NCBI GenBank assembly: GCA_011109175.1
Contig: RDEW01000008.1
Span: forward strand, 1,041,276-1,105,275
Length of the DNA: 64,000 bases
Reading direction: 5' to 3'
Source: Dicyema japonicum
Lineage: Eukaryota > Animalia > Dicyemida
The notes under the pieces were generated by a model that had not been told where the DNA came from, did no database searches, and worked only from the letters and a program-made list of their open reading frames with translations. The number at the start of each line of letters is the position of its first letter. Position 1 is the stretch's first letter. Below are positions 23,917 through 63,079 of the stretch, in pieces. Made by a program: the position numbers and the translations under genes.

Positions 23917-25424
23917 TTAAATTAGTATGTTAATTAAAATCCATCCAAGTAGGAGGAATGATAATTCCACTGGACGAGAAACGGAGGAAGTACTGAATTT
24001 TCGGGCATGCGTGCTTACTATCAAATTAGAGTTAATTATTGAACTTGTTATGCTCAAATCTTCAAATAAAAATATTAAAATGATTAAATGTTNNNNNNNN
24101 NNNNNNNNNNNNNNNNNNNNNNNNNNNNNNNNNNNNNNNNNNNNNNNNNNNNNNNNNNNNNNNNNNNNNNNNNNNNNNNNNNNNNNNNNNNNNNNNNNNN
24201 NNNNNNNNNNNNNNNNNNNNNNNNNNNNNNNNNNNNNNNNNNNNNNNNNNNNNNNNNNNNNNNNNNNNNNNNNNNNNNNNNNNNNNNNNNNNNNNNNNNN
24301 NNNNNNNNNNNNNNNNNNNNNNNNNNNNNNNNNNNNNNNNNNNNNNNNNNNNNNNNNNNNNNNNNNNNNNNNNNNNNNNNNNNNNNNNNNNNNNNNNNNN
24401 NNNNNNNNNNNNNNNNNNNNNNNNNNNNNNNNNNNNNNNNNNNNNNNNNNNNNNNNNNNNNNNNNNNNNNNNNNNNNNNNNNNNNNNNNNNNNNNNNNNN
24501 NNNNNNNNNNNNNNNNNNNNNNNNNNNNNNNNNNNNNNNNNNNNNNNNNNNNNNNNNNNNNNNNNNNNNNNNNNNNNNNNNNNNNNNNNNNNNNNNNNNN
24601 NNNNNNNNNNNNNNNNNNNNNNNNNNNNNNNNNNNNNNNNNNNNNNNNNNNNNNNNNNNNNNNNNNNNNNNNNNNNNNNNNNNNNNNNNNNNNNNNNNNN
24701 NNNNNNNNNNNNNNNNNNNNNNNNNNNNNNNNNNNNNNNNNNNNNNNNNNNNNNNNNNNNNNNNNNNNNNNNNNNNNNNNNNNNNNNNNNNNNNNNNNNN
24801 NNNNNNNNNNNNNNNNNNNNNNNNNNNNNNNNNNNNNNNNNNNNNNNNNNNNNNNNNNNNNNNNNNNNNNNNNNNNNNNNNNNNNNNNNNNNNNNNNNNN
24901 NNNNNNNNNNNNNNNNNNNNNNNNNNNNNNNNNNNNNNNNNNNNNNNNNNNNNNNNNNNNNNNNNNNNNNNNNNNNNNAAAAAAAGTTTGATTAACTAAT
25001 GCATCAGAATCACCAAAATGTGGTATCTATAATATAAAAATACCGACAACATTAACATAAATATATTTTAGATTAATAAAACTAGAATCTATTTTCATGT
25101 CAAATCCAACAAGTATATTTTCAAATAGAAAATTGATGTAGAACTCATTATTTCTTCTATTCACAAATTTGACTTCTGTCTGTTTGAATTTAATATCTCG
25201 ATTCTACTACTATGAAATTCACTTACGAATCTATTATGTTTAATCAATACGTAAATCTCTCCAGAAAATAATATAGAAAATTTGTTATGTACGCGAATGA
25301 TCCACATTGGAGCTTGATTTAATAACAGTTCATCAATAGTGATTTCAAGTAGAATTAAGCCAAAAAACAACACAATTACTACAAAATTAATAAATTCAAA
25401 CAAACCTTCAATTATAAAGATCAT
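23917..25424 (-). CDS. LAMP-like domain + mucin stalk + GPI-type tail surface glycoprotein, copy B (best candidate intact gene; middle in assembly gap)
   Basis: Exons 25424-25406, 25378-25227, 25203-25051, 25026-(gap) and terminal exon 24059-23917; introns 27/23/24 nt GT-AG. All sequenced exons are open, ending ...FSTSSVSRPVELSFLLLGWILINILI*. Confidence 0.65.
24093..24978. other. Assembly gap (N run) inside copy B, where the tandem stalk exons are expected
   Basis: 886 N. Confidence 1.
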
Positions 25425-31342: not shown

Positions 31343-32442
31343 ATGATCTTTATGTTTGGAGGTTTGTTTGAATTTAATAATTTTGTAGAAATTGTGTTGT
31401 TTTTCGGTTTAATTCAACTTGAAATCACTACTGAACTGTTATTAAATCAAGTTCCAAAGTGGATCATTCGCGTACATAACAAATTTTCTATATTTGTTTC
31501 TGGGGAAATTTACGTATTGATTAAACATAAGAGATTCGTAAGTGAATTTCATAGTAGTAGAATCGGTTATTAAATTCAAATAGACAGAAGTCAAATTTGT
31601 AAATCGAAGAAATAATCAGTTCCACATCAATTTTCAATTTGAAAATATATTTGTTGGATTTGTCATGAAAAAGGATTCTTAATTTTATTAATCTAAAACA
31701 GATTTATGTTAATGTTTTCGGTATCTTGATATTTTAGATACCAGATTTTGGTGATTTTGATGCATTAGTTAATCAAACTTTTTTGATTAAGAATTATTAT
31801 TTTTGTCTCATTTTTAAATTGGACTATGTTAGAATTATTCTTTACATATTCAATTTACAACTACAAGTATCACAAACATCTGAAATTACATCATTTTCTG
31901 GAATCGGTTATATTTATAATAATTTTAAGCTGATTTTTGTAATAAAAATCTGTTGTGTAATGAACCTATTGAACAAAATAATCAATACTTTAAGTTGTTT
32001 TATTAATATTTATTTTCTTTTATTTTTTTATTATTTTTAGAAAACACAACGACTATTTCCACAACTACAACTGAAAGTATATATATTTTAATTTCATATT
32101 TATAAATTCATGCATTCAAATAATATTTTTATTCATAGAAATGGCCACTACACTTACTCCCACAAGTACATCTGAAGGTACAAAATCTTCAATTATTGAT
32201 TAATCAATTCATATAGTGAAATGTTAGATTCATCCACAGAATTGGCCACTACACCTACTCCCACAAATACAACTGAAGGTAAAATATCTTCAATTAATGA
32301 TTAATCAATTCATATACTTAAATGTTAGATTCACCCACAGAATTGGCCACTACACATTCTCCCACAAATAAAACTGAAGGTAAAATATCTTCAAATTATG
32401 ATTAATAAATTCAAATGGATTTTAATTAACATACTAATTTAA
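31343..32442 (+). pseudogene. LAMP-like/mucin family copy C (frameshifts; most of terminal exon deleted)
   Basis: Same micro-intron structure; stalk exons 32041-32076, 32139-32177, 32228-32278, 32329-32379; last intron jumps into the final codons of the GPI tail. Confidence 0.7.
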
Positions 32443-33099
32443 ATTAAACTAACAGGTATCTTTGTTAAATTATTTTTTGACACTAATTTATTTATTTTTT
32501 AACCCATACACATAAAGAAAAACTTCAGTGATTAATAATCAATTAAGTTTATCCAATGACCAAGTGTTAGTCGGAGATAGAGATGTGTTTCTAAACACAT
32601 AACTCGTTCCAAAACCACACTGATAGACATTCTCCAAGAGATTATCTGTTGTCATATGAGAAATATGATCTATTTGATGTTTTTCTAAAATTGGAATTTT
32701 TGTTAACGAAGAAATGAATTGAAAAAAAGAATCAGTATAATAAATTGAAAGCTTGGTAAGTTGTTATTATGATGGTTTCATATTGAATAATATTAATTTT
32801 CAAATATTAGGTTGTATCTTATTTATTTATTTATTTATTTAATAACCCCGAAAAGGGAACACCAAGAAAGAAGGAGTAATCCAACTTATTAAGTGATCCC
32901 GGTACGCCTCAACAGGATCGAGAGGTTTGTATCTTAAGCTGCCCAATTAGAACTTTGTGATCATATGACTTAATTTGTTTGTTTTGGAAATGAATTATCT
33001 CAATTCTATGAAATATTTCAAAGTAATTATGTTAATTTAATTAACGCAAACTAAATAATTCCTAAAATATTTAAATTTTTAAATATTTAAATTTTTAGG

Positions 33100-35509: not shown

Positions 35510-36698
35510 CTTTAAAAGTTTTCCTAAGTGGGCAGCGATAATTTCCGCCACTTCCCTCTGGTCCACAATTTGCGTTCTTTGTCATCTTTTATAATTATCG
35601 GTTGATGGGGTCTTTCCCTTCATCTGTTTCACAGCCTCGTAGAATCTAGCGTTGTCCTTGAGAGATTCTATCTTCTTAATCTGGTCCAGTGCTCGATTTC
35701 TGTTATGCTGGCGCATAGTTTTTCTTATTTTTGCTTTGATAGTTATTCTTTCTAGCCTCAATTTTGATTTTACGTTCGAATCGTCAGTATCTTGATATAG
35801 CATCCATATGGTCTTCTGTTTATTGGCAAGGTCCTTCACCGTGTACATGTCATTGTGCGATGGGATTTTCTCATTTTCTTTCATAGATGCAGATTGGCTT
35901 TTTTATGTATTGACTGTTTTACAAAATCCCAGGATTTTCCGGGCGGCAAATCTGTAGGCATGTATTCTAGTTCTGCATCCAGATATTCTCTGAATGCTAG
36001 GGCCCCTTCTGATTGACTGATTAAGGATTCCAAGTTATAACGTCTATAGCTGGGTTCTGTGGTTTTAATTTGCTTTCATTTCGTTCTTTGTAGTACCATA
36101 AATCTTTTTTGAGAAAGTCTAGCAATAACCATTTTCTGGTCGCTGTCGATAATCGATCCATTATAAGCTCGTGCATCAAGTATAATCCCTCGATCTTTTT
36201 GCCTGCATATGATATAGTCGATCTGGTTGTACATATTTATCACTCACCTTCGAGATTTGTTCTGTGTACCGACCACGTAGATTTATGTCTGGCTGGATGC
36301 ATGAAGGTGTATTGCATAAAAATAGGTTGTTCGTTTGACAGAAGTTAGCTAGTAGAGTTCCCGGGGAATTTCTTTTCTCCCTTCCATGCTTTCCCATGAA
36401 TATATCATCGGTCGTAACCTGGGTGCCATTTTTCGCATTTAGGTATCCTGCGATCATTACTAATGTCGAGAAAGCATACTTGGAAAAGACGGCAGAAAGA
36501 TTGGTGTAAAAGTCATCAATCTCCCCAGGGTTTTTATTAAGACATCCACTGTGAAGGCCGTAAACGTTTATTATAGTTATATATTTTTTCGACGGGTTGA
36601 GGTCATCCAGTTTCAATTGCAACACCCCGATTCTATCATTCACACTGTAATATCGGCAGACTCTTGGATAAATCATTCCTGACGGCAAATCCTAGCCC
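35510..36698 (-). mobile_element. RTE-like LINE APE endonuclease and linker fragment
   Basis: NDRIGVLQL, IINVYG, AGYLNAK.G, GKHG...RNSPG..LANFC..NNL, YNQIDYIIC motifs; near-identical to 53838-55019. Confidence 0.8.
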
Positions 36699-39270: not shown

Positions 39271-39523
39271 TAAGTTTTAATAACTTAATTTATTTTTATA
39301 AAATAATTATTAAATTAATTAATTTATTATAATAATTTTTTATAATTAATATTCATGAATAATTAATTATTTAACTCAAAGAATCGTCGTCCAATTACGT
39401 CCTGTCAAAAAGGTTAAGTTTTAATAACTTAATTTATTTTTATAAAGTAATTATTAAATTAATTAATTTTATTATAATAATTTTTTATAATTAATTATTC
39501 ATGAATAATTAATTATTTAACTT

Positions 39524-41140
39524 ATGATCTTTATGTTTGGAAGTTTGTTTGAATTTAATAATTTTGTAGAAATTTTGTTGTTTTTCGGATTAATTCAACT
39601 TGAAATCACTATTGATGAATTGTTATTAAATTCAGTTCCAATGTGGATCATTCGCGTATATGAAAAATATTCTATATTATTTTCTGGAGATATTTACTTA
39701 TCGATTAACATTATGAATTAGTAAGTGAATATCAAAGTAGTAGAATCGAGTTATCAAATTCAACCAGACAGTCAAATTTGTGAAACGAAGAAATAATGAG
39801 TTTCTATCAAATTTCAATTTGAAAATACACTTGTTGAATTTGTCATGAAAAAGAATTCAAGTATTATTAATCTAAAACAGATTTATGTTAATGTTGTCGG
39901 TATCTTGATATTATAGATACCGTATATTTGTGAGTCTTATGCATTAGTTGATCAAACTTTTTTGATTAGCAATTATTATGATTGTCCTATTTTTAAATTG
40001 GACTATCTTGGAATTATTCTTTACATTTTCAATTTAAAACTACAAGTATCTCAAACATCTGGAATTACATCATTTTCTGAAACCTGTTGTATTTATTATA
40101 ATTTTAAGTTATAATTGCAGTAATGACTTGTTATGTGATGAACCTAGTGAACTAATAATCGGTACTTTAAGTTGTTTTATTAATATTTATTTTCTTTTAT
40201 TTTTTATTATTTTTAGATAACACAACAACTACTTCTACGACTAAACCTGAAGGTAAATATCTTCAATTAATGATTAATCAATTCATATACGTAAATTTAG
40301 ATTCACCCACAGAATTGGCCACTACACCTTCTCCCACAAATACAACTGAAAGTAAAATTTCTTCAATTAATGATTAATCAATCATATAATTAAATGTTAG
40401 ATTCACCAACAGATTGACCACCACACTAACTCCCACAAGTACAACTGAAGGTACAATATCTTCAATTAATGATTAATCAATTCATATACTTAAATGTTAG
40501 ATTCAACCACAGAACTGACCACCGAATCTACTCTCACAAACAACTGAAAGTACAATATCATCAATTAATGATTAATCAATTCATATACTTAAATGTTAGA
40601 TTCACTTACAAAACTGACCACCACATCTACTCTCACAATTACAACTGAAGGTACATTTTCTTCAATTAATGATTAATCAATCATATAATTAAATGTTAGA
40701 TTCAACCACAGAATTGACCACCACATCTACTCCCACAAGTACAACTAAAGGTACAATATCTTCAATTAATGATTAATCAATCATATACTTAAATGTTAGA
40801 TTCATTCACAGAATTGGCCGCTACACCTACTCCACAAGTACAAATGTAGGTAAAAAATTTTAATTAACATTTAATCAATTCATACACTTAAATGTTAGAT
40901 TCACCCACAGAATTGGCCACTACAACGACTCCACGACTATAATTGAAAGTAAAATGTTTTAATTCAACATTTAATCAAGTTTATTATTTTAATTTAAGAT
41001 TCGAGCTTAACAAGTTCAACAATAAACTCTAATTGATAGTAAGCATGCATGCCCGAAAATTCAGTACTTCCTCCGTTTCTCGTCCATTGGAATTATCATT
41101 CCTCCTACTTGGATGGATTTTAATTAACATACTAATTTAA
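39524..41140 (+). pseudogene. LAMP-like/mucin family copy D with 8 stalk exons (several 1-2 nt indels)
   Basis: Stalk exons at 40217-40252, 40301-40351, 40401-40450, 40501-40549, 40600-40650, 40700-40750, 40800-40849, 40899-40948; terminal exon 40999-41140 has a 1 nt deletion. Confidence 0.7.
40253..40948 (+). repeat. Minisatellite of seven ~100 bp units, each intron (GT...TTAG, ~48-50 nt) + Thr/Ser exon (~51 nt)
   Basis: Unit e.g. GTACAATATCTTCAATTAATGATTAATCAATTCATATACTTAAATGTTAG / ATTCAACCACAGAATTGACCACCACATCTACTCCCACAAGTACAACTAAAG. Confidence 0.9.
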
Positions 41141-41315
41141 ATTACACTAACAGATATATTTGTTAAATTATTTTCTGAGACTAATTTATTAATTATTTAA
41201 CCCAGGACACATAAAGTAAGTAGTCGGTGATTACCTGTTGTCATATTAGAAATGTAATCTATTTAATGTCTCCTGAATTTGTACTTCATGGTAACAAAGA
41301 AATGAATTGAGAAGA

Positions 41316-41861
41316 GGACTCAAAATCCCAAAAGACACAAAGAAGCAAAGTAATTGGGATTCCATTGTCTGCTCCAAAATTTTAGAAGATTTTAAAAAAA
41401 AAGTAAATCAACTTATTTGTCGTCAGCTTTAAGTGGAGGGAGTAGAGCATGGCTTGGTGCAATACCTTATCCAATCCTCGGGACTTTTTTAGACGACGAT
41501 TATTTGATGATTGGAATCGGACAACGGCTAAGACTAGACGTTTGCCAAAAGCACTGATGCCGATGTGGGAAAACAGTCGATGCGAAAGGATTGCACCCGC
41601 TGTTTAGCAGAAGAAGCGCCGTAAGTGGACCACGTCACGCTGCTCTGAACGATGTGATCGTCATAGCTCTGAAGGCTACAGGCTTCCCAGCACACCTTGA
41701 ACCAGTGGGTCTCGATCGAGGAGATGGAAAGAAACCCTTTCACATCCGGAAGATCTTAGGTCTGGAACGCAACTTGTGTTGACACATTCTCAAGCACGAA
41801 TCTTTTCAAATCAGTTCAAGACACCTGGAGCAGCTGCTTTGACTGCGGAAAACCTAAAAAT
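41316..41861 (+). mobile_element. CRE-like CCHC/RLE fragment, 3'-truncated by junction with Jockey-like element
   Basis: [25 protein letters not shown]; matches 58221-58766. Confidence 0.8.
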
Positions 41862-44500
41862 GACTTTCTCGACTTTTTCATGAGAACATTATCAATCCTT
41901 TTGACGAGAGAAAAACTACGCTTCACACCCGTATAGTAGCTCTGGTAGAATAATCTTTATGAAGATAAACAAGAAGGTCTTCAAGCTTACGAACAACTTG
42001 CTCGTACAGAGAAGCGCTTGTACCGCCTTCTTCCTTCTTCGTCTGATATTTTCCATTAAGGAACCTTCTCCTTCAATAACTACTTTGAGGTAACAGAGTA
42101 AGTTTACTTTTGGAATATCAAGTGAGTAGGGCTGTGTACGGTGTCTCGTAGACGGCTAACTCTCAAGTAGCTGGACTTCTCCGTAGATAGTCTTATCCCT
42201 CTCTTGGAGCACCAATTTTGCACTTGGTCGATGAATGACTTGATTCTTCTTTCCGATAGAGTTTACTTCCAAGACATATCTGTAATTAGAATATCGTCTG
42301 CGTATATCAATAGTTTGGTGTTCGCATCCAGAGGAATTGGAAAGTCTGATAGAAACACGTTGAACAGAAGCGGGCTCAAGGTAGAGCCTGTGGAACGCCC
42401 CTCTTCAGAAAGATATCTTTTGACATACTCGTCCCAACACGTATTTGGGAAGTCCGTCCTGTTAATAAGTTTTTTATCCATATGAAAAGTTTCCTTTGGA
42501 TAGTGACAGCCGCTAGCTTTGATAGCAGTGCATCATGCCACACGCTATCGAATGCCTTGGTCAGGTCCAAACATACTATGTTAACTTGCTTCTTGAATTC
42601 AGACCTCTCAATACCACCGAATGTATGTGGTGGATGCAATCCGTGCAGGATTTCCCAGGTCTGAAGCCACATTGTTCTGCGAAAGGAAACCACTTCTTAT
42701 ATGTGCTCGTTTAGCCTCTTGAAGATAATTCGCTCAACAATCTTGGAAATAGAGCAAATGAGGCTGATCGGCCTATAGTTGAGAGGGTCCCTCCCCGACT
42801 TTCCAGGTTTCAGGATCATTCTAACTATGGAGGTTTTTCAGTTTGGGGACATACACATAATCTATGCTCGCGTTGACTAAATTCTTCAGCACGAGCAGCA
42901 GATCATCTGGGCCTTCCTTGAACATTCTCTTGCTAATATGGTCATGTCCACGGGCGTTAGCTTTGTACACTCTATTGGCAATCACGATGTCCTCTGTCGT
43001 TATCTTCATAACAGTATCTTTGAAATCGTCCGGGAATAAGTAATAAGTTCTTTTGAAGCTCTCAACTCTTCCCTCGGATCAGCTCCGTCGGGTTGACTTC
43101 CTGGATACGGTCTAGTTGCTTCTTAAAGATTTCCAGTACTTCTTCCATAGAATATGATCTACCTTCCAGTTTGTTCAGAGAGATTTTCACATCATTCCAC
43201 TTCTGGCCTGTTATTTTTTTGTAGATCTTCCAGATCGAAGGGTTTTGCTTGTTTCGACCCTCCAACATTGTTCTATTGCCAGTCTTGTTCCCTCTTCAAT
43301 AGCTTTTTTGATTATTTTTAGTTGGCCAGTCAATGTAATCGGTCCATCCAGTCGACACATCATCTGCGTTTGTTCCTCAGTCGGTTTCTTTCTTTAATCA
43401 TAGATAGTGTAGAAGGGAGAAATTAATGCTCTTCTTATAATTGGTATCGGAGAGTCTCCTCCTGGCGTAAAGTGATAAGTATCTCTTCCAGAAAGTTGTC
43501 TATGTTGTCAATATCATTTCGGGAATAAGGTCCCTCCTTCCATTTTTTGAGATTTCAAACATGTATCTTCATAGTGTTCCCAATTTAATCTTGATTGGTC
43601 TGTTCCCTTAGCCTGTGAACACTGACTCGTAGTGTCCGGAGCCAGGTTCAGTGACATCTCTTGAGGGATGCGGTCGCTCCCGATGTCCCACATGATCATC
43701 GGTCTCTCCACATAAGTGTAGAGCAGTGATGACACCAGGAACACTTCAAGCATGTCTCCACCGTAGTGCGAGAAGTGATTCGGCTTCTCCGATGTCAAAA
43801 TCTCGAAGCCAGTCTAGTAACTCAATTTTCTTAGCCTGATTCCATCCTCGTTGGTTCCAAGGCATCCATGTTTAATGTTCTTGGCGTTTAGATCTCCCAC
43901 TAGGACAGACATATCGTTTCCCGCGAAGAATTCTTCAATTTCTGTGGAGCACTTTCTGAGGACCTTTGAATACAATCCTCCAACGTGTATCCAACGGCCA
44001 CAGCATCTCACCTAGACGAAAACAAATTCACAATGTGTATTCATAATTACTTTTGGCTCACGTATCTGTAGAACATCACTGTAGAAAATGTGGTTCCAGT
44101 ACTAGCCTCTGCATATTCGACCCATGGTATTTCTATAGAATTACATCCCCGTAGCATTGTAGTGTTGGTCTTTTTCACCTTAGTCTCGTTGACCACCAGG
44201 ATGTCAATCTTGGTGGCCGACAGAAGTAGTGCCAGGTCATGACGCCTATTCCTCAGTGATCGGGCGTTCACCAGCTATCTTCAGGTTTCTTCTCAATTTT
44301 CTTTTTGGTGAACTGGCTCTCCATGGCCAGGTCCACCATTCTTTTTAAATCCACTCCAAGTTCAGTTCTTCAGTCTATATTATTTCTTCCAGTTCTTTTG
44401 CAAATCTCCTGGTATCTTAGAAGAGGAGCTGGTTCATTCTTGTTAGTCCTTGGGACAATTATTCTTTTTTGGGTAGGAGTTTCACTTTGTTATAACTTAT
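41862..44500 (-). mobile_element. Jockey/I-like LINE ORF2 (APE + RT), frameshifted, both ends truncated
   Basis: NARSLRNRRHDL..ETK, VGDLNAK, NYRPISL, LDLTKAFDSVWH, RGVPQ, YADD motifs. Confidence 0.85.
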
Positions 44501-44524
44501 ATCTGTTCTAATTGTCTGTTCTAA

Positions 44525-44611
44525 ATAAAAAAGTTTTAAGGGTCGATTAAATAATATGGGGGTCAAAAAAAGTCAAGGGGTCGACGAGCAAAAAAAGGTT
44601 GAGAACCCCTG
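44525..44611 (+). mobile_element. hAT right-end remnant
   Basis: GGTTGAGAACCCCTG (44597-44611) preceded by repeated GGGTC(G)A subterminal motifs and followed by CTCTAAAT; absent from paralogue at ~62105. Confidence 0.7.
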
Positions 44612-45124
44612 CTCTAAATCATCCCACCCACAGAGAAGTTGCGTTGGATCCCAGAAGAGGCACAAGGAGAGAATGAGAATTCGGTGTAAGATAATAAGCC
44701 TGGAGGTAATGGAGTCTCGCTGGAGACAATTCTGGCACTTCTTGAAGATGGAATTGGTATTCTTGCTTAACAGAGATATAGAAGACTACTATGTTTGTTT
44801 CCGACGACCCCCCGTTCTTACTGAGAAAAATGACGTCACTTCTAAACACTAACTTTCCAGAAAAAATAGATACCCCTTGGATCTTGGCTACTTCCTATCC
44901 AGAAACTAAACGATTCCCAATTCATGTGTATACGAGTTCGAAAAGTTATTGTCTCATCTAGATCAATGGAGATGACTTCACCGGGAGGACCATACAGTAG
45001 CTTGTTTTTTTAGCCAATAATTTAAGCCAAATACTCTACTTCAGTGTGTTTTAACAATTCTTGAAAGTAATTCAAATCTTGATGTTTGATATTTTTCGGT
45101 ATTAAGAATTTGAAGATGACTAAT

Positions 45125-45197
45125 GCCTCCGTGGCGCAACGGTTAGCGCGTGTGGCTGTTAACTGCGAGGTTGCCGGTTCGAATCCGGCCGGAGGCG
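45125..45197 (+). tRNA. trnN: tRNA-Asn (anticodon GTT)
   Basis: 73 nt cloverleaf: acceptor GCCTCCG/CGGAGGC+G, D-arm GCGC, loop CTGTTAA, T-arm GCCGG-TTCGAAT-CCGGC, T-run just downstream; anticodon stem is G-U rich. Confidence 0.9.
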
Positions 45198-45559
45198 AAT
45201 TTTTATCTAAACAAAGTTACTTTTTTTGCAAATTGCCAAATTATAAAAAAATATACCGTATTCCTTATACTAAAATATTTATAAACATCTATTTTTTCCT
45301 GTTTTCTTTCTAGGCAAAAATTAATTTTTTAAAAAAAACATATTCTTAGAAATTATACTTCATTGCTAAACTAAGTAAAATCATTCGGGTCACTCAACTT
45401 AGATTCAATAAAATAATATTTTTTTATTTCAGGATGGCTTTAAGCGACACTCTGTGTTTACAGATATATTCACAATTTCACTAGTAAAGTTATACATAAA
45501 CAATTTTTTTTTAAATCAAAATAAATTTTTCTACTTGCTGCTCTCAGAATCCAAGACAA

Positions 45560-46170
45560 ATTAAGTTAATGAAAGCCATATTAACCATGTCAAGATAAAT
45601 ATTCATCCAATGGGCCCCCAACTACTTCACTCATCGTCCTCTAATGGATTTCTTTGTGGTCAAATAGTGACGATGATCTATTCATTTATTTCATTTGCAC
45701 TTTCATCTTCATAAAAGACGCAGTTACTTCTTCCTCTTTTTTGACTTATAGCTTTCCAAAATAATAATCCCTTCATTGCCGAGAAGGGTCTAAGTGTTTG
45801 GCTGTACTTCATAAACAAGATATAGTCAGACGTTCGAGATGTACAGTAGGACATGTGTGGTTGATAACTCCTTGAAACATCGCCATAAATTTATCATCTG
45901 CATAAACTTGAACAGTATGTATGGATCATTGAAGTATGGAATATCGGATAAAAACAAATTTAATAATAAAGTGAACAGTGGATGTCTTTGAGGAACATTG
46001 TTCGGTAAGAAGCGAGATATTGATAACGTACTCTCCGGCGTCGCACGGAAAAATTGTTATCTTAGTATTATATCGGATTCGAATGTCTTTTGAATATCAC
46101 TACAAATCCGAGATGTGTCACAGTAAAGCGACCCGGTTTGTAGTCGTATTGGAAGGAAGATGACAAAAGA
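45560..46170 (-). mobile_element. Highly degenerate non-LTR RT fragment
   Basis: Paralogue at 63080-63690 gives VDIQKTF, NGVPQ, LNLFLSDIP, VQVYADD. Confidence 0.5.
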
Positions 46171-49169
46171 TCTGGGAAAATAATTTTTAAAACAAGCTTT
46201 GTGCATGTGAGAAAGACCGGGCTAGAGAATTAAGAGTAATAGGATTTATTTTTTTTAATTTAAAAATATTATTATTAATATTTAATCGATCTTAAATATA
46301 AAGTAAATGAACGTTTATATTTCTTTATGTGTTTTGGTGGTGCACTGAGATCTCCATTTTAATTAGTTAAAATGGTCGAAAAGTGCAATATTATTCTACA
46401 CTTAACGTTGCTACTATCTTAGTAGTTAGTATAGTGTACTACATTCATTTTTAAACTTGTATATTGCCGATGATACTCGATATCCAGTAGAATCCATGAA
46501 TCCACCATTTGTGATTTATACACTGAAATTTCTCACATATGCCCAAGAATATTCATATTCTCCTTTATTGTTCAACCTTTCTCTGGTTGTTTTTAGCTGC
46601 TTTATTAGGTCGTTGTTTAGGGTGTATCCCAAAAATATTTCGTCGGGATGTGTTCTTTAATTACCATCTTCGAAAGTGATTCAAGCACACGTGACATTTT
46701 GAATTGAAATCGAATTTCCCAGCAATTGTATGATAACGTGTCAGATCACTGTGTAGATATGACATCCTAACGACAGCAGTTATTTCTTCAATTTGGAAAT
46801 GTTCGCCAAATCGACACATTAAATTCGAATCCAGAGATCACTATATTCCGTCCATCTGTATGAGAAATTCGACTTTCTGTGTAGACACAAGCAGAGACAC
46901 TTCTGACAGAGGTTAGGTTTTTCGATGAACACAGGATGGAAATAGCATGAGCGATAGGGGGAACCAGGTACATATAACTAGAACGGTTATCATTATCTAA
47001 GGGGTTGACTGGATGGCTATTCCCCTCAGGATGGCTAGCTAGATTCGCTCAAAATAACCAGCGTCGCTGACGGGGATCTCCTGTTCATGCGAAATCAGAT
47101 TTCCTAGACGACTCAAGAATTTTAGCATCACAGGAGCAATGGAACTTGACATTCAAAAGTGTGCAAGACTAACAAAAAATATGACCGTATACTCTCAGTT
47201 TCATATCAGCCGATTGAATTATTTATTTAACTTTTCAAGGATAAGTTGAGGTACTAACCTTTTTTGCACTAAAACCACACATCTGGTTTTAGATAGACTT
47301 TTGTAATATTGGAAGAACTGTTTCTGCAAAAATTGAAAGTAATGTATCTCTCTTGCTTCGTCTACTCTCCATATCTTCGATTCTTAGAATATTGTGTGGA
47401 AAGTAGAAGTCAAGAAAATTATTTTTTTTATTTTCAAGTAAGTACTACTTCACATGAAAATACTAACCATCCAACAAGATTTCCAACATTGAACTCGACA
47501 GGCCAGCCCAGCATGAAAAATAATTTTTTCAAAAACCAATCCTGTCTTCTGAGTTAAATCTGAGTTGCCCAAGAAGACTTTTAACTATACCGTGAAAGTT
47601 CAATTGTGAGGATTTCAAAAGACAGTTACATGTCTGGTTGGGGGAGATGACTTTTAAAGGTATCAAATCGAAATTCGTGGAAATTGGTAATGTTAACAAA
47701 GGTTCCTTGGTTTTCTGAGGCATTGTTAAAACCCATGAACGGGTTTTCCCTCAATCGCCTGACGTGATCTGAAAATTGTAGTCATGATAGATCCGCTACT
47801 TTCCGCAAAACTATGTAAAATCTGTAAACAACTTCGAAGACAAAGATTTGGATATCGAATCGATCCTGATGCCTTTTTAGGGATATCATCTAAACATGGC
47901 ATGCTACCAATTGACTCTTCAAGTCTGATCATAAAATACTCACAAATATAGTAAGGCAGTCGAGTTCTGCATTCGATACGTGATTATTACTGAAAAAAAT
48001 CTCAGAAAGTGATATATGTCAACTGTAAAAATGAGAAAGAACAGTTCTCCGATTAACAAGGTACTCATCAAAGGGGGTTCATTCATAGTCGTTTGTGAAG
48101 AAATGACAAAAAATCGTTGGGTATTCGACTTTTGGAAATTTCTAGTGCCTGGACGCCATATTAAGAGGATCTCGTTTTTCCATACTCCCCTTGAGGGGTT
48201 TCAAGTGGCGGATATGATGCATGGAAAATGCATCTCATTCTGACCGCTGGAACTGGGATTACTTTGTTAGTTGAGTACTCTCTTTCTCTTTAACCAGTGA
48301 TCCTGAGTCAATAAATATAGAATGTCTTGTTTCAATATTTTTAGAAATATTATGATGCTTTGTTAGAAATCAATGAGGCAAATAATTCCATATGTGGGGA
48401 ATCTTGGAGTCGTTTAGCTACAATAGCGCTAGAGATAAAAGACAACGATCCTTGTTTCCAAATAATTCCAGAGTATTACCCCCATCTACTTAGAGTGCGC
48501 ATCAAATTTGATGGAAATAAATGGCATTGTTGTACAATTGGAGAGAGCGAAGAGCTCAATTCCCCAGATTCAACAAAAATTAATTTACCACCTGTCCATT
48601 CAAGTGAAGGAAACCGGTGGTGACTTTTTCTCTCAGTTTTGTATAAATAGGCGTTGAGACCCACGTGATGACCGCAGCGGAGGCGCGAGAGTTTACCCGA
48701 ATTTTAAGAGGAAGGCAATTATTCTGTCGGGGTGCGATTTTTGAATTAATTTTTTTTTAAATTGTTATATATTTATAATTAAATTTCAAATAATTAAATA
48801 ATGTAGCATGCAGCTTTCTGGTGTGACCTGTTAAAAGTAAGAAAATATGTAGACAACTATTTATCTTTTGTTTTCATTTAAAATATCTACTTAAAACCAT
48901 GTGTTTTGCAAATGTGGTGTGAATTTTTTCTAACAAAGCGATTTAGCTATCTCGCTTATTGGAACACACACAACGCACGCATTCGGAATCACTAGGAAAA
49001 GTTATTGAATGTTTTTTAAATTTAAAGCAAAACTATGGCAAAGTGATAAACATAACGTCATTAATAAATACCTGAAGACCCACAAATTATTCATGTCTTT
49101 TGTATTCACATAAAGATGGAGAAATTATCGCCAATGCTGGTTTTTTATCTTTTTTTAATTTATAAGACA

Positions 49170-53837: not shown

Positions 53838-55253
53838 CTTTAAAAGTTTTCCTAAGTGGGCAGCGATAATTTCCGCCACTTCCCTCTGGTCCACAATTTG
53901 CGTTCTTTTGTCATCTTTTATAATTATCGGTTGATGGGGTCTTTCCCTTCATCTGTTTCACAGCCTCGTAGAATCTAGCGTTGTCTTTGAGAGATTCTAT
54001 CTTCTTAATCTGGTCCAGTGCTCTATTTCTGTTTTGCTGGCGCATAGTTTTTCTTATTTTTGCTTTGATAGTTATTCTTTCTAGCCTCAATTTTGATTTT
54101 ACGTTCGAATCGTCAGTATTTTGATATAGCATCCATATGGTCTTCTGTTTATTGGCAAGGTCCTTCACCGTGTACATGTCATTGTGCGATGGGATTTTCT
54201 CATTTTCTTTCATTAGATGAAGATTGGCTTTTTTATGTATTGATTTCTTTACAAAATCCCAGGATTTTCCGAGCGGCAAATCTGTAGGCATGTATTCTAG
54301 TTCTGCATCCAGATATTCTCTGAATGCTAGGGCCCCTTCTGATTGACTGATTAAGGATTCCAAGTTATAACGTCTATAGCTGGGTTCTGTGGTTTCAATG
54401 TGCTTCCATTTCGTTCTTTGTAGTACCATAAATCTCTTAAGAGAAAGTCTAGCGAAAACCATTTTGTGGTCGCTGTCGCTAATTGATCCACCATAAGCTC
54501 GTGCATAAGTATAATCCCTCGATCTTTTTGCCTGCATATGATATAGTCGATCTGGTTGTATATATTTATCACTCACACTTCGAGATTTGTTCTGTGTCCC
54601 GACCACGTAGATTTATGTCTGGCTGGATGCATGAAGGTGTATTGCATAAAAATAGGTTGTTCATTTGACAGAAGTTAGCTAGTAGAGTTCCCGGGGAATT
54701 TCTTTTCTCCCTACCATGCCTTCCCAAGAATGTCTCATCGGTCGTAACCTGGGTGCCATTTTTCGCATTTAGGTTTCCTGCAATCATTACTAATGTCGAG
54801 AAAGCATACTTGGAAAAGACTGGTGTAAAAGTCATCAATCTCCCCAGGGTTTTTATTAAGCCATCCACTGTGAAGGGCGTAAACGTTTATTATAGTTAGA
54901 TATTTCTTCGACGGGTTGAGGTCATCCAGTTTCAATTGCAACACCCCGATTCTATCATTCACACTGTAATATCGGCAGACTCTTTTGGATAGATCATTCC
55001 TGACGGCAAATCCTAGCCCATAGAGCTTGTTTCTACCTGGAAGGAAGATTAGTCGAAAGTTCTCATGTTGTTCTTTGATCCCGTTGATTAGTTTAATCTC
55101 CTGAAGGCAGGCGATTGAAATCATGTATTTTGTTAGATCCTCGACCAGTTCCTTCCGGTTCCGAACGCTAGAAAGTCCCCTGACGTTAAACGTGAAAAAG
55201 GAGAGTCCAATAGCTTGATACTGTGTTTTCCAGACATTGAGTTCAAGAGCCAC
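53838..55253 (-). mobile_element. RTE-like LINE 5' part (ORF start, APE endonuclease, linker); RT deleted
   Basis: TFNVRGLSS...IACLQEIK, LGFAV, NDRI, YNQIDYII, SDHKMV motifs across ORFs 54735-55253, 54569-54868 and 53911-54606. Confidence 0.85.
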
Positions 55254-55403
55254 GTTAAATTAGGTTAATTAATTCATAATTTACATATAAAACTTATTTT
55301 AATAACTTAATTTATTTTTATAAGTTAAGTTATTAAATTAATTAATTTTATTATAATAATTTTTTAAAATTACTTATTCATAAATAATTAATTATTTTAC
55401 TTA

Positions 55404-56533
55404 ATGATCTTTATGATTGGAGGTTTGTTTGAATTTAATAAGTTTGTAGAAATTGTGTTGTTTTTCGGTTTAATTAAACTTGAAATCACTATTGATAAAG
55501 TGTCAAATAGTCAAATTCCAATGTGGATCATTAGTGTAAATGACGAATTTTCTATTTTATTTTCTGGAGAGATTAACGTGAGGATTACAGATAATGGAAT
55601 GGTAAATGAATATGATAGTAGTAGGATCGAGTTGTCAATTTCAACGAGACAGTTGTCGGTTATGAGAATCTAGGAAATAATGAATTCTATATCAATTTAC
55701 AAGTTGGAATTACACTTGTTAGTTTTAAATTGAAAATGGATGATAATCTTAATTATTTAAATCTAATTTATGTTATGGTTGTCGGTATCTTGACATTATA
55801 GATACGGGGAATTGGTAGTTCTTCTATTAATATTAATGAAATATTTTTGATTAGAAATTATTATTATTGTCATAATTTAAAGATAGAATTTCCTCCATTT
55901 ATTTTACACATTCTACTTTAAACTACAAGTATCTCGAACACCTGGAATTACATCATTTTCTGAAACCTGTTGTATTTATTATAATTTTAAGTTGATAATT
56001 GCAGTAATGATCTGTTAAATAATGAACCTATTGAACCAATAATCGGTCCTTTAAGTTGTTTTATTAATATTTATCATCTTTTATTTTTTTATTTATTTTT
56101 AGGACACACTACAGCTACTTCCACTACTACAAGTGAAGGTAAATATTTTAATTTCATGTTTATAAATTAATGCAATTAAATAATATTCTTATTCATAAAA
56201 TTGATAACTACAGCTACTCCCACAAATACAGCTGAAGGTAAAATATCTTCAATTTATGATTAATCAATTCATATAATTAAATGTTAGATTCACCCACAGA
56301 ATTTGCCACTACAACTACTTCCACTACTACAATTGAAGGTAAAATATTTTAATTCCCTATTTAATCAATTTATATCATTTTTATTTTAAGATCCGAGCAT
56401 AACAAGTTCAACAATTAACACTAATTTGATAGTAAGCATGCATGCCCGAAAATTCAGTACTTCATCCGTTTCTCGTCCAGTGGAAGTAACATTCTTCCTA
56501 CTTGGATGGATTTTAGTTAACATACTAATTTAA
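55404..56533 (+). CDS. LAMP-like domain + mucin stalk + GPI-type tail glycoprotein, copy E (complete; one 2 nt frameshift, real or sequencing error)
   Basis: Exons 55404-55422, 55450-55601, 55625-55777, 55802-55968 (2 nt short near 55905-55925), 55992-56045, 56103-56138, 56288-56338, 56391-56533; introns 1-4 are 27/23/24/23 nt; a 39 nt stalk exon near 56199-56237 has lost its AG. Confidence 0.6.
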
Positions 56534-56964
56534 TTTAAACTAACAGATTTCTTTGTTAATTTTATTTTCGGAGATTAATTTAATAATTATTTAACCCAGG
56601 ACACACAAAGAAAGATATCGGTGATTAATAATTAATTATGTTTATCCAAGTACAAAGTTGTAATAGGATAGAGACATGAACCTCTATACAAACAACTAGA
56701 TCCGAGATCACAGTGAGAGACATTCTCCATGAGATTAACTGTCGTCATATGAGAAATGTAATCTATTTGATGTCTTCCTGAATTTGGACTTCATGGTAAC
56801 AAAGTAATGAATTGAGAAGAGAAGTAAGTAAGATGAATTGAAAGCTTGATGAACTGTTATTAGGATGACATCATACTGACTAATAAAACTTTTCAAAGAT
56901 TTGGTTGATTCTTAAGCTGCCCCGTTGGAACTTTGTGATCATATGACTTAATTTGGTTGTTTCG

Positions 56965-58766
56965 GAGATCAATTATATCAATGGTTTTGAAAAACGAGTG
57001 ATATGGTGTGATCAATGAAAATCTCAGATGGAAATTAAAGAACGAAAAGAAGACGAAGTCTAGAAACAAAGCCAGTAGAGACAACTCAGGTATGTCTCTT
57101 ATGTGGACATTCGAAACTCAGGAAATTTAGAATTAATTTCACGCAATATGAACCATTCGTCCATTTGGGCTCGTAAAAATCAGTAAAGCTTGCGCCGAGA
57201 CGCTGTCGGGTTATCTGTCCATTCTTGTATTGGAAAAAAGCTCCCCAGGCTGGAAAAAATAGCTCAGCCAAACTTTACACTGACACATACTGAGCAAACT
57301 ATCTTGCGAACCTCCGGAAAGTCAGGAAGATCCCAGTAAAAATCCGTAAAGGAGTAAGAATTGCAGAAGCAACGTGTCAGATGCCATTGATCACGGACTG
57401 TAATGAGGTCGAAACTAGAGGAGCATACACCAAATATGTCCCCAACAAACTAAAGGAAAGAGTAAAACTGAAACTTCTGGAGGGCGACGACGTGCGGGCT
57501 GCTTTACGGGTTATCACGTCCGATGACACAGTATTGTCTTGTACTCCTGAGTTCTTGAAAACCTTAATACTGAAAAACCTTAATACTGACTATGAAAAGT
57601 TTTAGAATCCTGAATGAACCCGCTAAATCTCTGGTACCTCGATGATGCCACAATTGGAGGATCATTCAAGGAAACATACAATTCATTACGTGAAACGTTA
57701 TCCGGTTTAAAACACTTGGGCTTGGACTTCAATGTTAACAAATCAGAGCTAATGAATGTCTCATATCCGAACACCGACATTCTATCTATCAAAAAGTCCT
57801 TTAACGAAATGCTTCCTGGAATCCCGACTGTGCCAGTTGATAAATTATATTTCCTCGGATCAGCGAAAAACTCAAGAACTATCTACTTTGCAAAAATGAA
57901 GAATTACACGGTTCGCGAAAAGATTGTCATGTCTCGACTCTCACACATCCTTCTCCCAGATGAGAAACAACATCGGACTACCCAAGCTTTTATATCTACT
58001 ATGATGTTCACTTTGCTACGAACAATACGACAGTCTACTTTCGATAGACAAATTTCTCAAATAAAATGTTGAATCACCTAATTAACGTCCGCTTCGACGA
58101 ACTTAGTTAGAAGCAATGTAAGCTTCTTTCTGGAATTGATGTTGTTGGTCTAAGATCGGTGCTGGAAACCGCGTACCTGGCATATCTATCGTCTCTCTCA
58201 AGCTGTACTGGAACGGGTCCGGACTCAAAATCCCCAAAGACACAATGAAGCAAAGTAATTGGGATTCCATTGTCTGCTCCAAAATTTTAAAAGATTTTAA
58301 AAAAAAAGCAAATCAACTTATTTGTTGTCAGCTTTAAGTGGAGGGAGTAAAGCATGGCTTGGTGCAATACCTTATCCAATCCTCGGGACTTTTTTGGACG
58401 ACGATTATTTGAGGATTGGAATCGGACAACGGCTAAGACTAGACGTTTGCCAAAAGCACTGATGCCGATCTGGGAAAACAGTCGATGCGAAAGGATTGCA
58501 CCCGCTGTTTAGCAGAAGAAGCGCCGTAAGTGGACCACGTCATGCTGCTCTGAACGATGTGATCGTCATAGCTCTGAAGGCTACAGGCTTCCCAGCATAC
58601 CTTGAACCAGTGGGTCTCGTTCGAGAAGATGGAAAGAAACCTTTTCACATCCGGAAGATCCTTGGTCTGGAACGCAACTTGTGTTGACAGATTCTCAAGC
58701 ACGAATCTTTTCAAATTAGTTCAAGACACCTGGAGCAGCTGCTTTGACCGCGGAAAACCTAAAAAT
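56965..58766 (+). mobile_element. CRE-like retrotransposon, long degenerate copy (PHD remnant, RT, CCHC/RLE)
   Basis: VCLLCG...RKF...FVHLG, RKIPVKIRKGVRIAEA, LNLWYLDDATIGG, RHAALND; internal deletions. Confidence 0.75.
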
Positions 58767-61700
58767 GACTTTCCCGACTTTTCCATGAAGAACATTATCA
58801 ATCCCTTTGACGAGAGAAAAACTACGCTTCACACCCGTATAGTAGCTCTGGTAGAATAATCTTTATGAAGATAAACAAGAAGGTCTTCAAGCTTACGAAC
58901 AACTGCTCGTACAGAGAAGCGCTTGTAGCGCCTTCTTCCTTCTTCGTCTGATATTTTCCATTAAGGAACCTTCTCCTTCAATAACTATCCTGAGGTAACG
59001 GAGTAAGTTTACTTTTGGAATATCAAGTGAGTAGGGCTGCGTACGGTGTCTCGTAGACGGTTAACTCTCAAGTAGCTGGACTTCTCCGTAGAGAGTCTTA
59101 TCCCTCTCTTGGAGCACCAATTTTGCACTTGGTCGATGAATGACTTGATTCTTCTTTCCGATAGAGTTTACTTCCAAGACATATCTGTAATTAGAATATC
59201 GTCTGCGTATATCAATAGTTTGGTGTTCGCATCCAGCGGAATTGGAAAGTCTGATAGAAACACATTGAACAGAAGCGGGCTCAAGGTAGAGTCCTGTGGA
59301 ACGCCCCTCTTCAGAAAGATATCTTTTGACATATTCGTCCCAACACGTATTTGGGAAGTCCGTCCTGTTAATAAGTTTTTTATCCATATGAAAAGTTTCC
59401 TTTGGATAGTAGCAGCCGCTAGCCTTGATAGCAGAGCTTCATGCCACACGCTATCGAATGCCTTGGTCAGGTCCAAACATACTATGTTAACTTGCTTCTT
59501 GAATTCAGACCTCTCAATACCACCGAATGTATGTGGTGGATGCAATCCGTGCAGGATTTCCCAGGTCTGAAGCCACATTGTTCTGCGAGAAGGAAAACCA
59601 TGTACTCGTTTAGCCTCTTGAAGATAATTCGCTCAACAATCTTGGAAATAGAGCAAATGAGGCTGATCGGCCTATAGTTGAGAGGGTCCCTCCCCGACTT
59701 TCCAGGTTTCAGGATCATTCTAACTATGTAGGTTTTTCAGTTTTTGGGGACATAGACATAATCTATGCTCGCGTTGACTAAATTCTTCAGCACGAGCAGC
59801 AGATCATCTAGGCCTTCCTTGAACATTCTCTTGCTAATATGGTCATGTCCACGGGCGTTAGCTTTGTACACTCTATTGGCAATCACTCTGTCGTTATCTT
59901 CATCACAGTATTTTGAAATCGTCGGGAATAAGTAATAAGTTCTTTTGAAGCTCTCAACTCTTCCCTCGGGATCAGCCCCGTCGGGTTGACTTCCTGGATA
60001 CGGTCTAGTTGCTTCTTAAAGATTTCCAGTACTTCTTCCATAGAATATGATCTACCTTCCGGTTTGTTCAGAGAGATTTTCACATCATTCCTCTTCTGGC
60101 CTGTTATTCTTTTGTAGATCTTCCTGAACGAAGGGTCTTTGATGTTTAGTTTGCTTGTTTCGACCCTCCAACATTGTTCTATTGCCAGTCTTGTTCCCTC
60201 TTCAATAGCTTTTTTGATTATTTTTAGTTGACCAGTCAATGTAATTCGGTCCATCCAGTCGACACATCTTCTGAGTTTGTTCCTCAGTCGGTATCTTTCT
60301 TTAATCATAGATAGTGTAGAAGAAGGAAATTAATGCTCTTCTTATAATTGGTATCGGAGAGTCTCCTCCTGGCGTAAAGTGATAAGTATCTCTCCATCAC
60401 AGTTGAAAGTTCTCTGTCTATGTTGTCAATATCATTTCGGGAATAAGGTCCCTCCTTCCATTTTTTGAGATTTCTAAACATGTATCTTCATAGTGTTCCC
60501 AATTTAATCTTGATTGGTCGTAGCCTGTGAACACTGACTCCGTAGTGTCCGGAGCCAGGTTCAGTGACATCTCTTGAGGGATGCGGTCGCTCCCGATGTC
60601 CCACATGATATCAGTCTCTCCACATAAGTGTAGAGCATTGATGACACCAGGAACACTTCAAGCATGTCTCCACCGTAGTGCGAGAAGTGATTCGGCTTCT
60701 CCGATGTCAAAATCTAGAAGCCAGTCTAGTAACTCAATTTTCTTAGCCTGATTCCATCCTCGTTGGTTCCCAGGCATCCATGTTTAATGTTCTTGGCGTT
60801 TAGATCTCCCACTAGGACAGACATATCGTTTCCCGCGAAGAATTCTTCAATTTCTGTGGAGCACTTTCTGAGTTCCTTTGAATACAATCCTCCAACGTGT
60901 ATCCAACGGCCACAGCATCGCACCTCGACGGAAACAAATTCACAATGTGTATTCATAATTATTATTGCTCACGTATCTGTAGAACATCATGTGGTTCCAG
61001 TACCAGCCTCTACACATTCGACCCATGGTATTTCTACAGGAATTACATCCCCGTAGCATTGTAGTGTTGTCTTTTTTCACCTTAGTCTCGTTGACCACCA
61101 GGATGTCAATCTTGGTGGCCGACAGAAGTAGTGCCAGGTCATGACGCCTATTCCTCAGTGATCGGGCGTTCAGCAGCACTATCTTCAGGTTTCTTCTCAA
61201 TTTTCTTTTGGTGAAACTGGCTCTCCATGGCCAAGTCCACCATTCTTTTTAAATCCACTCCAAGTATGCCGCTTAGTTCATTCAGTCTTGATATTATTTC
61301 TTCCAGTTCTTTTGCAAATCTCCTGGTATCTTGAAGAGGAGATGGTTCATTCTTGTTAGTCCTTGGACAATTATTCTTTTTTGGGTAGGAGTTTCACTTT
61401 GTTATAACTTATAACATTCATCTGTTTCGGTTCCGTATTGTTGTTGATTCGGGGACTTCGCTTTCGCCTGGCCTCCACAAGCACAGGGAATCCTCCATAT
61501 TTTGCATCGTGTTTTGTTGATCCGCAGTTAACACAATTAAGGTTCAAGACCCGGATCCGCATTGCACCTGGAGGTGTCATGCTCTCCCGCGCAACGAAAG
61601 CATTTCTTCTTTCCCGTGCACTGGTATGCAAAGTGACCGACATGCTGACAGTTGTAACATATTGGCGGTCCTCTTCTCATCCATTCACAGGAGATCTTGT

Positions 61701-62500
61701 TCGTTCCAATGTAGAAGCCACAGCGTATTAGTGATGTGGCCTCGATTTAACCGAGGCCTTCTCCATTGGCATCGGCTGCGATCCTCTGGACATTCGGGTA
61801 ACTTTGTAGTTGAGGGAACCATCTCCTGAAGGTAGTCCAAGAGGTCGTCCTCATTCGCCTTGAAAGGCAGGTTCCTGAATACAATCACAGACGGTTTTGT
61901 TAAGAGTGTTCTGAATTGGTGTTTGTCGGGACCAAAAAGACAGATCTCATTTACGGCCTCTATATAAGTGGCCATGTAGAAGTTGAACTGAAAATCCAGT
62001 CGGAAGGAGCCCGGTCCTCTGTGGCTCATTCTCATAGATCCGTAGTGGTCATACACAGGCAGGATATGTCTTAAGTGAAAGATGTAAATCACCACTCTCT
62101 AATTTCTATTTTCTAAATCAACCCACCCACAGAGAAATTGCGTTGGATCCCAGAAGGGGCACAAGGAGAGAATGAGAATTCGGTGTAAGCTAATGAGCCT
62201 GGAGGTAATGGAGTCTCGCTGGAGACTATTCTGGCACTTCCTGAAGATGGAATTGGTATTCCTGCCTAACAGAGATATAGAAGACTACTATGTTTGCTTC
62301 CGACGACCCCCCGTTCTTACTGAGAAAATGATGTCACTTCTAAATATTAACTTTCCAGAAAAAATACCTGCCTCTTGGATCTTGGCTACTATTTCCTATC
62401 CAGAAACTAACGATTCCCAATTCATGTGTATACGAGTTCGAAAAGTTATTGTCTCACTTAGATCAATGGAGATGACTTCACCTGAGGACCATACAGTAGC
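58767..62500 (-). mobile_element. Jockey/I-like LINE: gag-like ORF1 with zinc knuckles + ORF2 (APE, RT); frameshifted, 3'-truncated
   Basis: CYNCQHVGHFAYQC, CFRCAGEH..C, CVNCGSTKH knuckles (~61500-61670); ORF2 motifs as in 41862-44500; 5' boundary (~62100-62500) uncertain. Confidence 0.8.
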
Positions 62501-62622
62501 TTGTTTTTTTAGCCAATAATTTAAGCAAATACTCTACTTCAGTGTGTTTTAACAATTCTTGAAAGTAATTCAAATCTTGATGTATGATATTTTTCGGTAT
62601 TAAGAATTTGAAGATGACTAAT

Positions 62623-62695
62623 GCCTCCGTGGCGCAACGGTTAGCGCGTGTGGCTGTTAACTGCGAGGTTGCTGTTTCGAATCCGGCCGGAGGCG
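62623..62695 (+). tRNA. trnN: tRNA-Asn(GTT) duplicate with two T-stem substitutions (possible pseudogene)
   Basis: Identical to 45125-45197 except T-stem GCTGT vs GCCGG, giving a G-U pair and a U-C mismatch next to the TTC loop. Confidence 0.7.
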
Positions 62696-63079
62696 AATTT
62701 TTATCTAAACAAAGTTACTTTTTTTGCAAATTGCCAAATTATAAAAAAATATACCGTATTCCTTATACTAAAATATTTATAAACATCTATTTTTTCCTGT
62801 TTTCTTTCTACGCAAAAATTAATTTTTTAAAAAGAGCCTATTCTTAGAAAATATACTTCATTGCTAAACTAAGTAAAATCATTCGGGTCACTCAACTTAG
62901 ATTCAATAAAATAATATTTTTTTATTTCAGGATGGCTTTAAGCGACACTCTGTGTTTACAGATATATTCACAATTTCACTAGTAAAGTTATACATGAACA
63001 ATTTTTTTTTAAATCAAAATAAATTTTTCTACTTGCTGCTCTCAGAATCCAAGACAAATTAAGTTACTGAAAGCCATAT

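Follow-up and report, generated by a model that had tools for sequence, protein, structure and literature searches.

Does the tandem array at 40217-40948 belong to a gene, and could a repeat of this kind set the length of a protein? The array lies on the forward strand of the window, by which we mean the whole stretch of 64,000 nucleotides of the Dicyema japonicum genome that we analyzed, and the original prediction held that it encodes a mucin stalk whose length is set by duplication of whole exon-plus-intron units. With a probability of about 0.75, our preferred reading is that the array represents the stalk-coding part of a decayed paralogue in a lineage-specific, clustered, mucin-like gene family, and that this paralogue, copy D, expanded to seven units before it decayed and is not a working gene. 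Under the mechanism that we propose, each repeat of the stalk would occupy one exon, with 17 residues encoded on a 51-nt phase 1-1 exon that is followed by a 49- to 50-nt GT..AG intron. This cassette of exon and intron would itself be the tandem repeat unit, and because the two coincide, changes in copy number would leave the reading frame undisturbed. Specifically, the gain or loss of cassettes through unequal exchange, gene conversion, or out-of-register duplication with breakpoints inside introns would lengthen or shorten the stalk by 17 residues at a time with the frame kept. Intact members of the family would comprise a hydrophobic N-terminus, a head of ~185 residues for which no relatives were detected, a Thr/Ser/Pro-rich stalk, and a short tail whose hydrophobic C-terminus would anchor the protein in the membrane. 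We infer splicing of the spacers, O-glycosylation of the stalk, and a cell-surface location of the protein.

The anatomy of copy D shows this arrangement in a decayed form. Tandem Repeats Finder (TRF) places an array at 40247-40955 with a period of 99, 7.1 copies, 85% matches, and a score of 935, and we set the unit borders by aligning each unit separately to the unit consensus. The stalk (40217-40948) begins with a 36-nt phase 1-1 exon (40217-40252, forward strand) that, read directly, encodes NTTTTSTTKPE and is homologous to 36-nt exons in copies F, C, E, and G. Seven units of ~100 bp follow on the same strand (40253-40998, from TRF and the per-unit alignment), each made up of a Thr/Ser/Pro-rich exon of ~51 nt in phase 1-1 and a 48- to 50-nt GT..AG spacer. 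The exons of units 1 (40301-40351), 4 (40600-40650), and 5 (40700-40750) are 51 nt long, while those of the other four are short by 1 to 2 nt: unit 2 (40401-40450, 50 nt, with a TGA at 40415-40417 in the phase-1 frame), unit 3 (40501-40549, 49 nt), unit 6 (40800-40849, 50 nt, ending in TAG at 40847-40849 in the same frame), and unit 7 (40899-40948, 50 nt). Every spacer starts with GTA and ends with AG, and the 3' ends read TGTTAG in six, ATTTAG in the first, and TTTAAG in the last. The earlier description of the repeat as an intron joined to a 51-nt exon is thus borne out by TRF and unit alignment, and the two peptides that accompanied it were correctly read (DSPTELATTPSPTNTTE for unit 1 and DSTTELTTTSTPTSTTK for unit 5). 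Its statement that all stalk exons are phase 1-1 and 36, 39, or 51 nt long needs correction for copy D, in which only four of eight stalk exons have a clean length of 36 or 51 nt.

A genome-wide search with the array led to a far longer one, copy F, located 26 kb upstream of the window (L001:2409-5907; G000:C356:1011408-1014906), which provides the strongest support for reading the units as exons and introns. Here, a 36-nt exon and a 39-nt exon are followed by 24 unit exons, all of which are exactly 51 nt long (24/24). When 31 GT-AG introns are removed, copy F becomes a single open frame of 671 to 687 codons that runs from ATG to TAA over 32 exons, with predicted introns of 23, 23, 23, 56, and 60 nt and the remainder of 49 or 50 nt. 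The head of this model is not unique, as dynamic programming gave many alternative three-intron models; we chose the one with 23-nt introns because its sites are conserved among copies and match the intron size of the genome. The predicted stalk of ~450 residues consists of 37% T, 13.5% S, 11% P, and 12% E, and the model therefore has the Pro/Thr/Ser-rich tandem repeats by which mucin (PTS) domains are recognized. The joined translation served as a check on frame and composition, and the database searches used the exons separately. A stop in the exon frame is present in 23 of the 25 spacers of copy F and nearly all spacer lengths are not multiples of three, from which it follows that the spacers cannot be coding. 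Within the copy, exons vary more than spacers (pi of 0.106 versus 0.079). Furthermore, where a rough scaling from copy D leads one to expect ~3.4 frameshifts, copy F has none (Poisson p of about 0.03), an absence that may partly reflect the youth of its units, which are 0 to 4% apart.

The remaining members of the cluster are less complete. Copy A (13923-14547, forward strand) is a head-only fragment that is frameshifted and truncated before the stalk. On the reverse strand, copy B (23917-25424) has an open visible head and an intact tail exon, coding from 24057 to 23920, and a gap of 886 Ns (24093-24978) replaces its stalk and the rear of its head. The gap had been judged wide enough for about six units; arithmetic gives room for about 5 to 6, a rough number, given that N-run lengths are scaffolder estimates. 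Copy C (31343-32450, forward strand) comprises a head and stalk exons of 36 nt (32041-32076), 39 nt (32139-32177), 51 nt (32228-32278), and 51 nt (32329-32379). Indels of 1 nt disrupt its head near 31565, 31679, and 31975, and most of its tail exon has been deleted, so that only the last 36 nt remain (32415-32450). Copy E (55404-56533, forward strand) has a head, a 36-nt stalk exon (56103-56138), a 51-nt exon (56288-56338), and an intact tail exon (56391-56533). A 2-nt deletion relative to copy F lies in its third head exon, and its 39-nt exon homologue has lost its acceptor, with CATAA in place of CATAG. Copies C and E thus each carry a unit of the 39-nt type in addition to those of 51 nt. 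Copy G, the seventh of the cluster, immediately precedes the window; stops interrupt its head, and its gap of 1,202 Ns (L002:1775-2976; G000:C356:1040074-1041275) cuts the stalk, opening 55 nt inside the intron that follows the first stalk exon and running to the window's first base.

The surroundings of the cluster are rich in other repeats. Copies D and E lie at the start of a large segmental duplication (39419-46499 versus 55297-64000) that bears retrotransposon-like open reading frames (ORFs), and within it two pairs of segments match at 95%, namely 41316-44501 with 58221-61413 and 44613-46499 with 62112-64000. Fragments of ORFs resembling the endonuclease and reverse transcriptase of non-LTR retrotransposons lie between the copies, at 53911-55253, 36176-36688, and 59168-59578 on the reverse strand and at 6118-6456 on the forward strand. 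A 135-nt AT-rich unit is present as two tandem copies at 3072-3341 that are 100% identical. The published D. japonicum assembly has 377 scaffolds that total 67.5 Mb, repeats make up 49% of it, and introns average 38 bp (PMC6736024); the ORF fragments agree with this repeat content and with the abundance of LINEs reported for the genome. A genome-wide search gave about 20 relatives of the tail exon, and our comparison set took in 15 further loci. Most members of the family are broken, with intact tails only in copies F, E, and B and in loci L003, L006, and L008, and the family may be largely decaying.

How, then, does the number of units change? Alignment to the unit consensus confirmed the counts of 51-nt units that had been given for copies E (1), C (2), and D (7), to which we can add locus L003 with none and copy F with 24. 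That unit number is set in the DNA by tandem duplication of whole exon-plus-intron cassettes, as the original prediction proposed, is upheld by this range of 0 to 24 among paralogues and by two scars of duplication. The first, in copy F, is a tandem pair (L001:4284-4550 and 4549-4815) that is 97% identical and spans 266 nt, or 2.65 units, out of register. It extends from the final 9 nt of a spacer to a point 6 nt inside a different one, with a 13-nt spacer at the junction (L001:4545-4557). The second, in locus L004, is an independent duplication of another kind of cassette, 113 nt long and comprising a 36-nt exon and a 77-nt intron, with 94% identity. Its 77-nt intron is chimeric, with the 5' part of the downstream intron joined to the 3' part of the upstream intron.

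Distances among units point to where growth may have taken place. The last units of three arrays (F24, E2, and D7) are mutual nearest neighbors across arrays, and the first units, of the 39-nt type (F1, C1, and E1), likewise group across copies. Interior units, in turn, resemble their own array: they are 0 to 4% apart in copy F and 6 to 11% apart in copy D, where they have shared substitutions of their own. Judged by these distances, edge units are positional orthologues and the interiors of F and D expanded separately. Kinship at the edges combined with homogeneous interiors is the pattern expected of growth from within by unequal exchange. Moreover, exon types and spacer types occur in shuffled combinations along copy F, which points to exchanges at many positions. 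A search of the copy F units for a higher-order repeat found none that was clean, the units instead forming a mosaic.

An argument can be made that differences in unit number largely reflect collapse, expansion, or mis-joins during assembly of the repeat, and we regard this as unlikely. The units of F and D hold many distinguishing substitutions and array-specific signatures, the units of copy D have decayed one by one in a manner that assembly collapse would not yield, and dispersed, well-diverged paralogues with zero to three units differ in number too. These observations outweigh the fact that N gaps begin in or beside the stalk in two of the seven cluster copies (886 Ns in B and 1,202 Ns in G), the possibility that the 13-nt junction in F is a mis-join, and the precedent of Schistosoma, in which near-identical equivalent repeats blocked assembly (PMC2576457). 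Assembly errors could still affect individual unit counts and the 13-nt junction. Loci L004 and L005 were considered as a candidate haplotig pair in what is a single haploid assembly; being 80% identical, they were rejected as alleles and are paralogues.

Exons and spacers also differ in the way in which they vary. Across the paralogues, we surveyed every AG..GTA segment of any length that was Thr/Ser/Pro-rich and open in the phase-1 frame. Among paralogues that are 70 to 80% identical, stalk exons measure 30, 33, 36, 39, 45, 51, and 63 nt, all of them multiples of three, as is a 54-nt fused stalk exon of L003 that was counted by hand. They are phase 1-1 family-wide, with exceptions in the broken copies D, L005, and L008. 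The spacers of the same paralogues measure 46, 49, 51, 57, 77, 95, and 100 nt and take any phase. Between positional homologues of F, C, and E, exons have diverged by 20 to 25% with gaps in 0 of 75 columns, compared to 9 to 10% with gaps in 10 of 176 columns for spacers (Fisher p of 0.003, 0.06, and 0.007 for substitutions and of 0.036 for gaps). Rapid substitution under a strict ban on indels is the look of coding sequence on which selection is relaxed or diversifying. The 63-nt stalk exon of L006 (L006:1988-2050), L011, and L012 seems to extend across sequence similar to the 5' part of relatives' spacers (GTATTCTCTTCTACG versus GTAAAATCTCTTCTACG in L009), and it may represent the start of a spacer that was turned into exon or else the loss of an intron.

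The same comparisons weigh against the view that we are dealing with an ordinary non-coding minisatellite that does not contribute to any spliced message, perhaps one carried along with repeat-rich segmental duplications, and whose exon and intron look is coincidental. A minisatellite of this sort would not be out of place in a region full of retrotransposon fragments and segmental duplications, where most family copies are broken. Two of the three frames of the Thr-rich segment are open, and an open stalk by itself therefore says little in favor of coding. Nevertheless, in copy F one GT-AG rule leaves ~680 open codons over 32 exons, with head, stalk, and hydrophobic tail in one phase. Such an alternative would also have to account for exons whose lengths shift by threes only, while spacer lengths shift freely, and that lack indels despite a substitution divergence about twice that of the spacers. 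We therefore consider it improbable and return to a coding stalk as the reading that we favor.

For copy D in particular, the coding frame has been lost. Its head (39524-40216, forward strand) comprises exons and micro-introns, opens with an ATG at 39524, extends through the intron that precedes the stalk, and is 86% identical to that of copy F, relative to which it has 1-nt deletions inside exons near 39706, 39804, and 40110, with stops following. Its last exon, encoding the tail (40999-41140, forward strand), is 91% identical to that of F and is frameshifted to a premature TGA at 41034-41036, such that translation ends after 11 codons compared to 46 in intact copies. With four damaged unit exons, there are eight frame-breaking lesions in all (three in the head, four in the units, and one in the tail). 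Because the deletions in the head and the frameshift in the tail add to the damage in the stalk, copy D is a dead gene whatever happens to its stalk. It had been suggested that units with deletions of 1 to 2 nt could be skipped without killing the gene, a suggestion that fails on the three frameshifts of the head and on the last exon. The idea that copy D still functions, with a shorter in-frame stalk left after frameshifted units are skipped during splicing, is highly improbable, for although the intact units are all phase 1-1, so that any one of them could be skipped in frame, and units 1, 4, and 5 are intact, rescue would call for selective skipping of four units by a genome with minimal splice signals (PMC13644364) in a gene whose head has early stops and whose tail is frameshifted.

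Splicing in the family would have to proceed with few cues. The splice signals reported for D. japonicum amount to no more than a 5' GTa and a 3' AG (PMC13644364), with which the GTA..AG spacers agree throughout. HSP70 genes of this genome are interrupted by gaps of about 23 to 51 nt, as expected in a dicyemid, and the stalk spacers, at 49 to 50 nt, are longer than the median intron of 27 bp published for Dicyema sp. (PMC6543705), a point against our reading. The exons also contain signals of their own. The second in-frame acceptor that had been noticed 12 nt inside most 51-nt exons corresponds to an inner AG (exon positions 11-12, mostly within CACAG) that is present in six of seven units of copy D, 24/24 of F, 2/2 of C, and 1/1 of E. 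At the other end, GTACAA, which is the commonest real donor hexamer, precedes the true donor by 12 nt in 11 of 24 units of F, and GTA occurs there in three of seven units of D. Use of the inner AG or of the inner GTACAA would keep the frame. In the first cassette of each gene, the 39-nt exon aligns with the 51-nt exon consensus from position 13 onward, and its acceptor is thus the counterpart of the inner AG.

These inner sites raise the prospect that a cassette contributes 51, 39, or 27 nt to the message or is skipped altogether, which would create combinatorial stalk lengths on top of change in DNA copy number. We consider this doubtful. The genome has been described as having very short introns and minimal splice signals (PMC13644364, PMC6543705). 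In intron-defined splicing, such features would, by our own inference, favor intron retention over exon skipping. The 13-nt junction spacer of copy F offers a special case, as it is probably too short to be spliced. There, use of the inner acceptor gives a 25-nt intron and stays in frame, as does exon skipping; retention does not.

Searches at the protein level returned little. A profile of six intact tail exons, run against 1.84 billion representative proteins, yielded two spurious repeat proteins and no true relatives, an outcome that neither supports nor refutes the model, and a Pfam search with four exons of copy F gave no match. An intronless retrocopy, which was sought among the genome matches and not found, would have recorded the spliced message, and its absence therefore counts against our model. 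With respect to the machinery of glycosylation and anchoring, a genome search for the GT2 domain (O-glycosylation machinery) gave generic matches only, and a search for the Gpi16 subunit gave no match, with a control that was likewise empty.

The tail itself allows more than one reading. Intact tails end in STSSVSRPVEVTFLLLGWILVNILI, which we compared to the GPI pattern of small residues, a spacer, and a hydrophobic end. After the codons for GWIL lies a 31-nt segment that starts with GT, ends with CTAACAG, and is nearly invariant among paralogues that are otherwise ~75% identical (L001:5890-5920 in F, 56516-56546 in E, and the equivalent site in L003, L004, L008, and L013). Downstream of it runs a short frame of 10 to 16 codons with a shared start (ISNLVHCF, ISHLVHYF, or ISWLNYF). 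Judging from these features, the segment could be a further micro-intron, in which case the protein would end in a transmembrane helix and a short basic tail and would have no GPI signal. Locus L006 speaks against an intron here, as its frame would stop after three codons. The tail exon also holds TGATAGTAA (56428-56436; L001:5802-5810), which is three consecutive stop codons in one alternative frame. Most of the frameshifted paralogues that we read (D, L005, L007, and L016) end at TGATAGTAA, and L009 and L010 stop earlier.

The cassette design is already known from the polymorphic mucins of the blood fluke Schistosoma mansoni (SmPoMuc). In these genes, a 27-bp exon 2 and its flanking intron form a genomic tandem repeat of ~1 kb that is present in 1 to about 20 copies per gene and varies in number among clustered paralogues, pseudogenes included; the intronic part is highly conserved, and the repeat has been likened to spider Flag silk (PMC2576457). 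The dicyemid family resembles SmPoMuc as a putative parasite mucin in which one small exon encodes each protein repeat, exon and intron make up the tandem unit, clustered paralogues differ in unit number, and pseudogenes are present. The spacers, too, are about half as diverged as the exons. Together with exons that are symmetric and a unit number that varies among paralogues, this places the family within the exon-per-repeat mucin design. In contrast to SmPoMuc, however, the dicyemid unit is ~100 bp (a 51-nt exon and a 49- to 50-nt intron) as opposed to ~1 kb with a microsatellite spacer, its repeat has 17 residues rather than 9, and the repeats separate the head from the membrane tail, where those of SmPoMuc are found at the 5' end. 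Variation among transcripts has been shown in SmPoMuc; in the dicyemid family, the genomic sequence shows the anatomy, frame logic, paralogue differences, and duplication scars. The likeness to SmPoMuc that we describe is one of design; the tail profile and the Pfam search on four exons of F gave no relatives.

Other systems are similar in part. In classical mucin VNTRs and in human LPA kringle IV-2, the copy number of a tandem unit sets protein length. The former sit within one large exon, while the kringle IV-2 unit, with exons and introns spread over about 5.5 kb, codes for a folded domain. Spider flagelliform (Flag) silk, as far as the account in the SmPoMuc paper goes, likewise has repeats made of exons plus introns, concerted evolution, and introns that are more homogenized than exons (PMC2576457). 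Unlike the dicyemid genes, Flag encodes a structural protein, has kilobase units, and has no membrane anchor. Finally, the micro-exon genes (MEGs) of schistosomes encode secreted proteins through short symmetric exons of 3 to 81 bp, any of which can be lost with the frame intact (bioRxiv 10.1101/2023.06.21.545858). They share with the dicyemid family the use of short symmetric exons in parasite proteins, but MEGs combine short exons with long introns of up to 5 kb, and their exons do not form an array of one cassette. The dicyemid introns are 23 to 60 nt and the cassette is a minisatellite, which sets the family apart from MEGs.

Our findings carry a warning for annotation, in that genes of this kind resemble satellites, are repeat-masked, and break assemblies. 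If splicing takes place as we propose, the cassette would be the most compact exon-plus-intron repeat that we know of, at 100 bp compared to ~1 kb in SmPoMuc. Dicyemids are animals of ~30 cells with extremely short introns, and the family would, as far as we know, be the first surface mucins described from them. On the same condition, it would provide a natural test bed for the choice of splice sites with GTa and AG as the sole signals. More generally, it would mean that an exon-per-repeat mucin that recombination can tune in frame arose independently in two parasitic lineages of spiralians.
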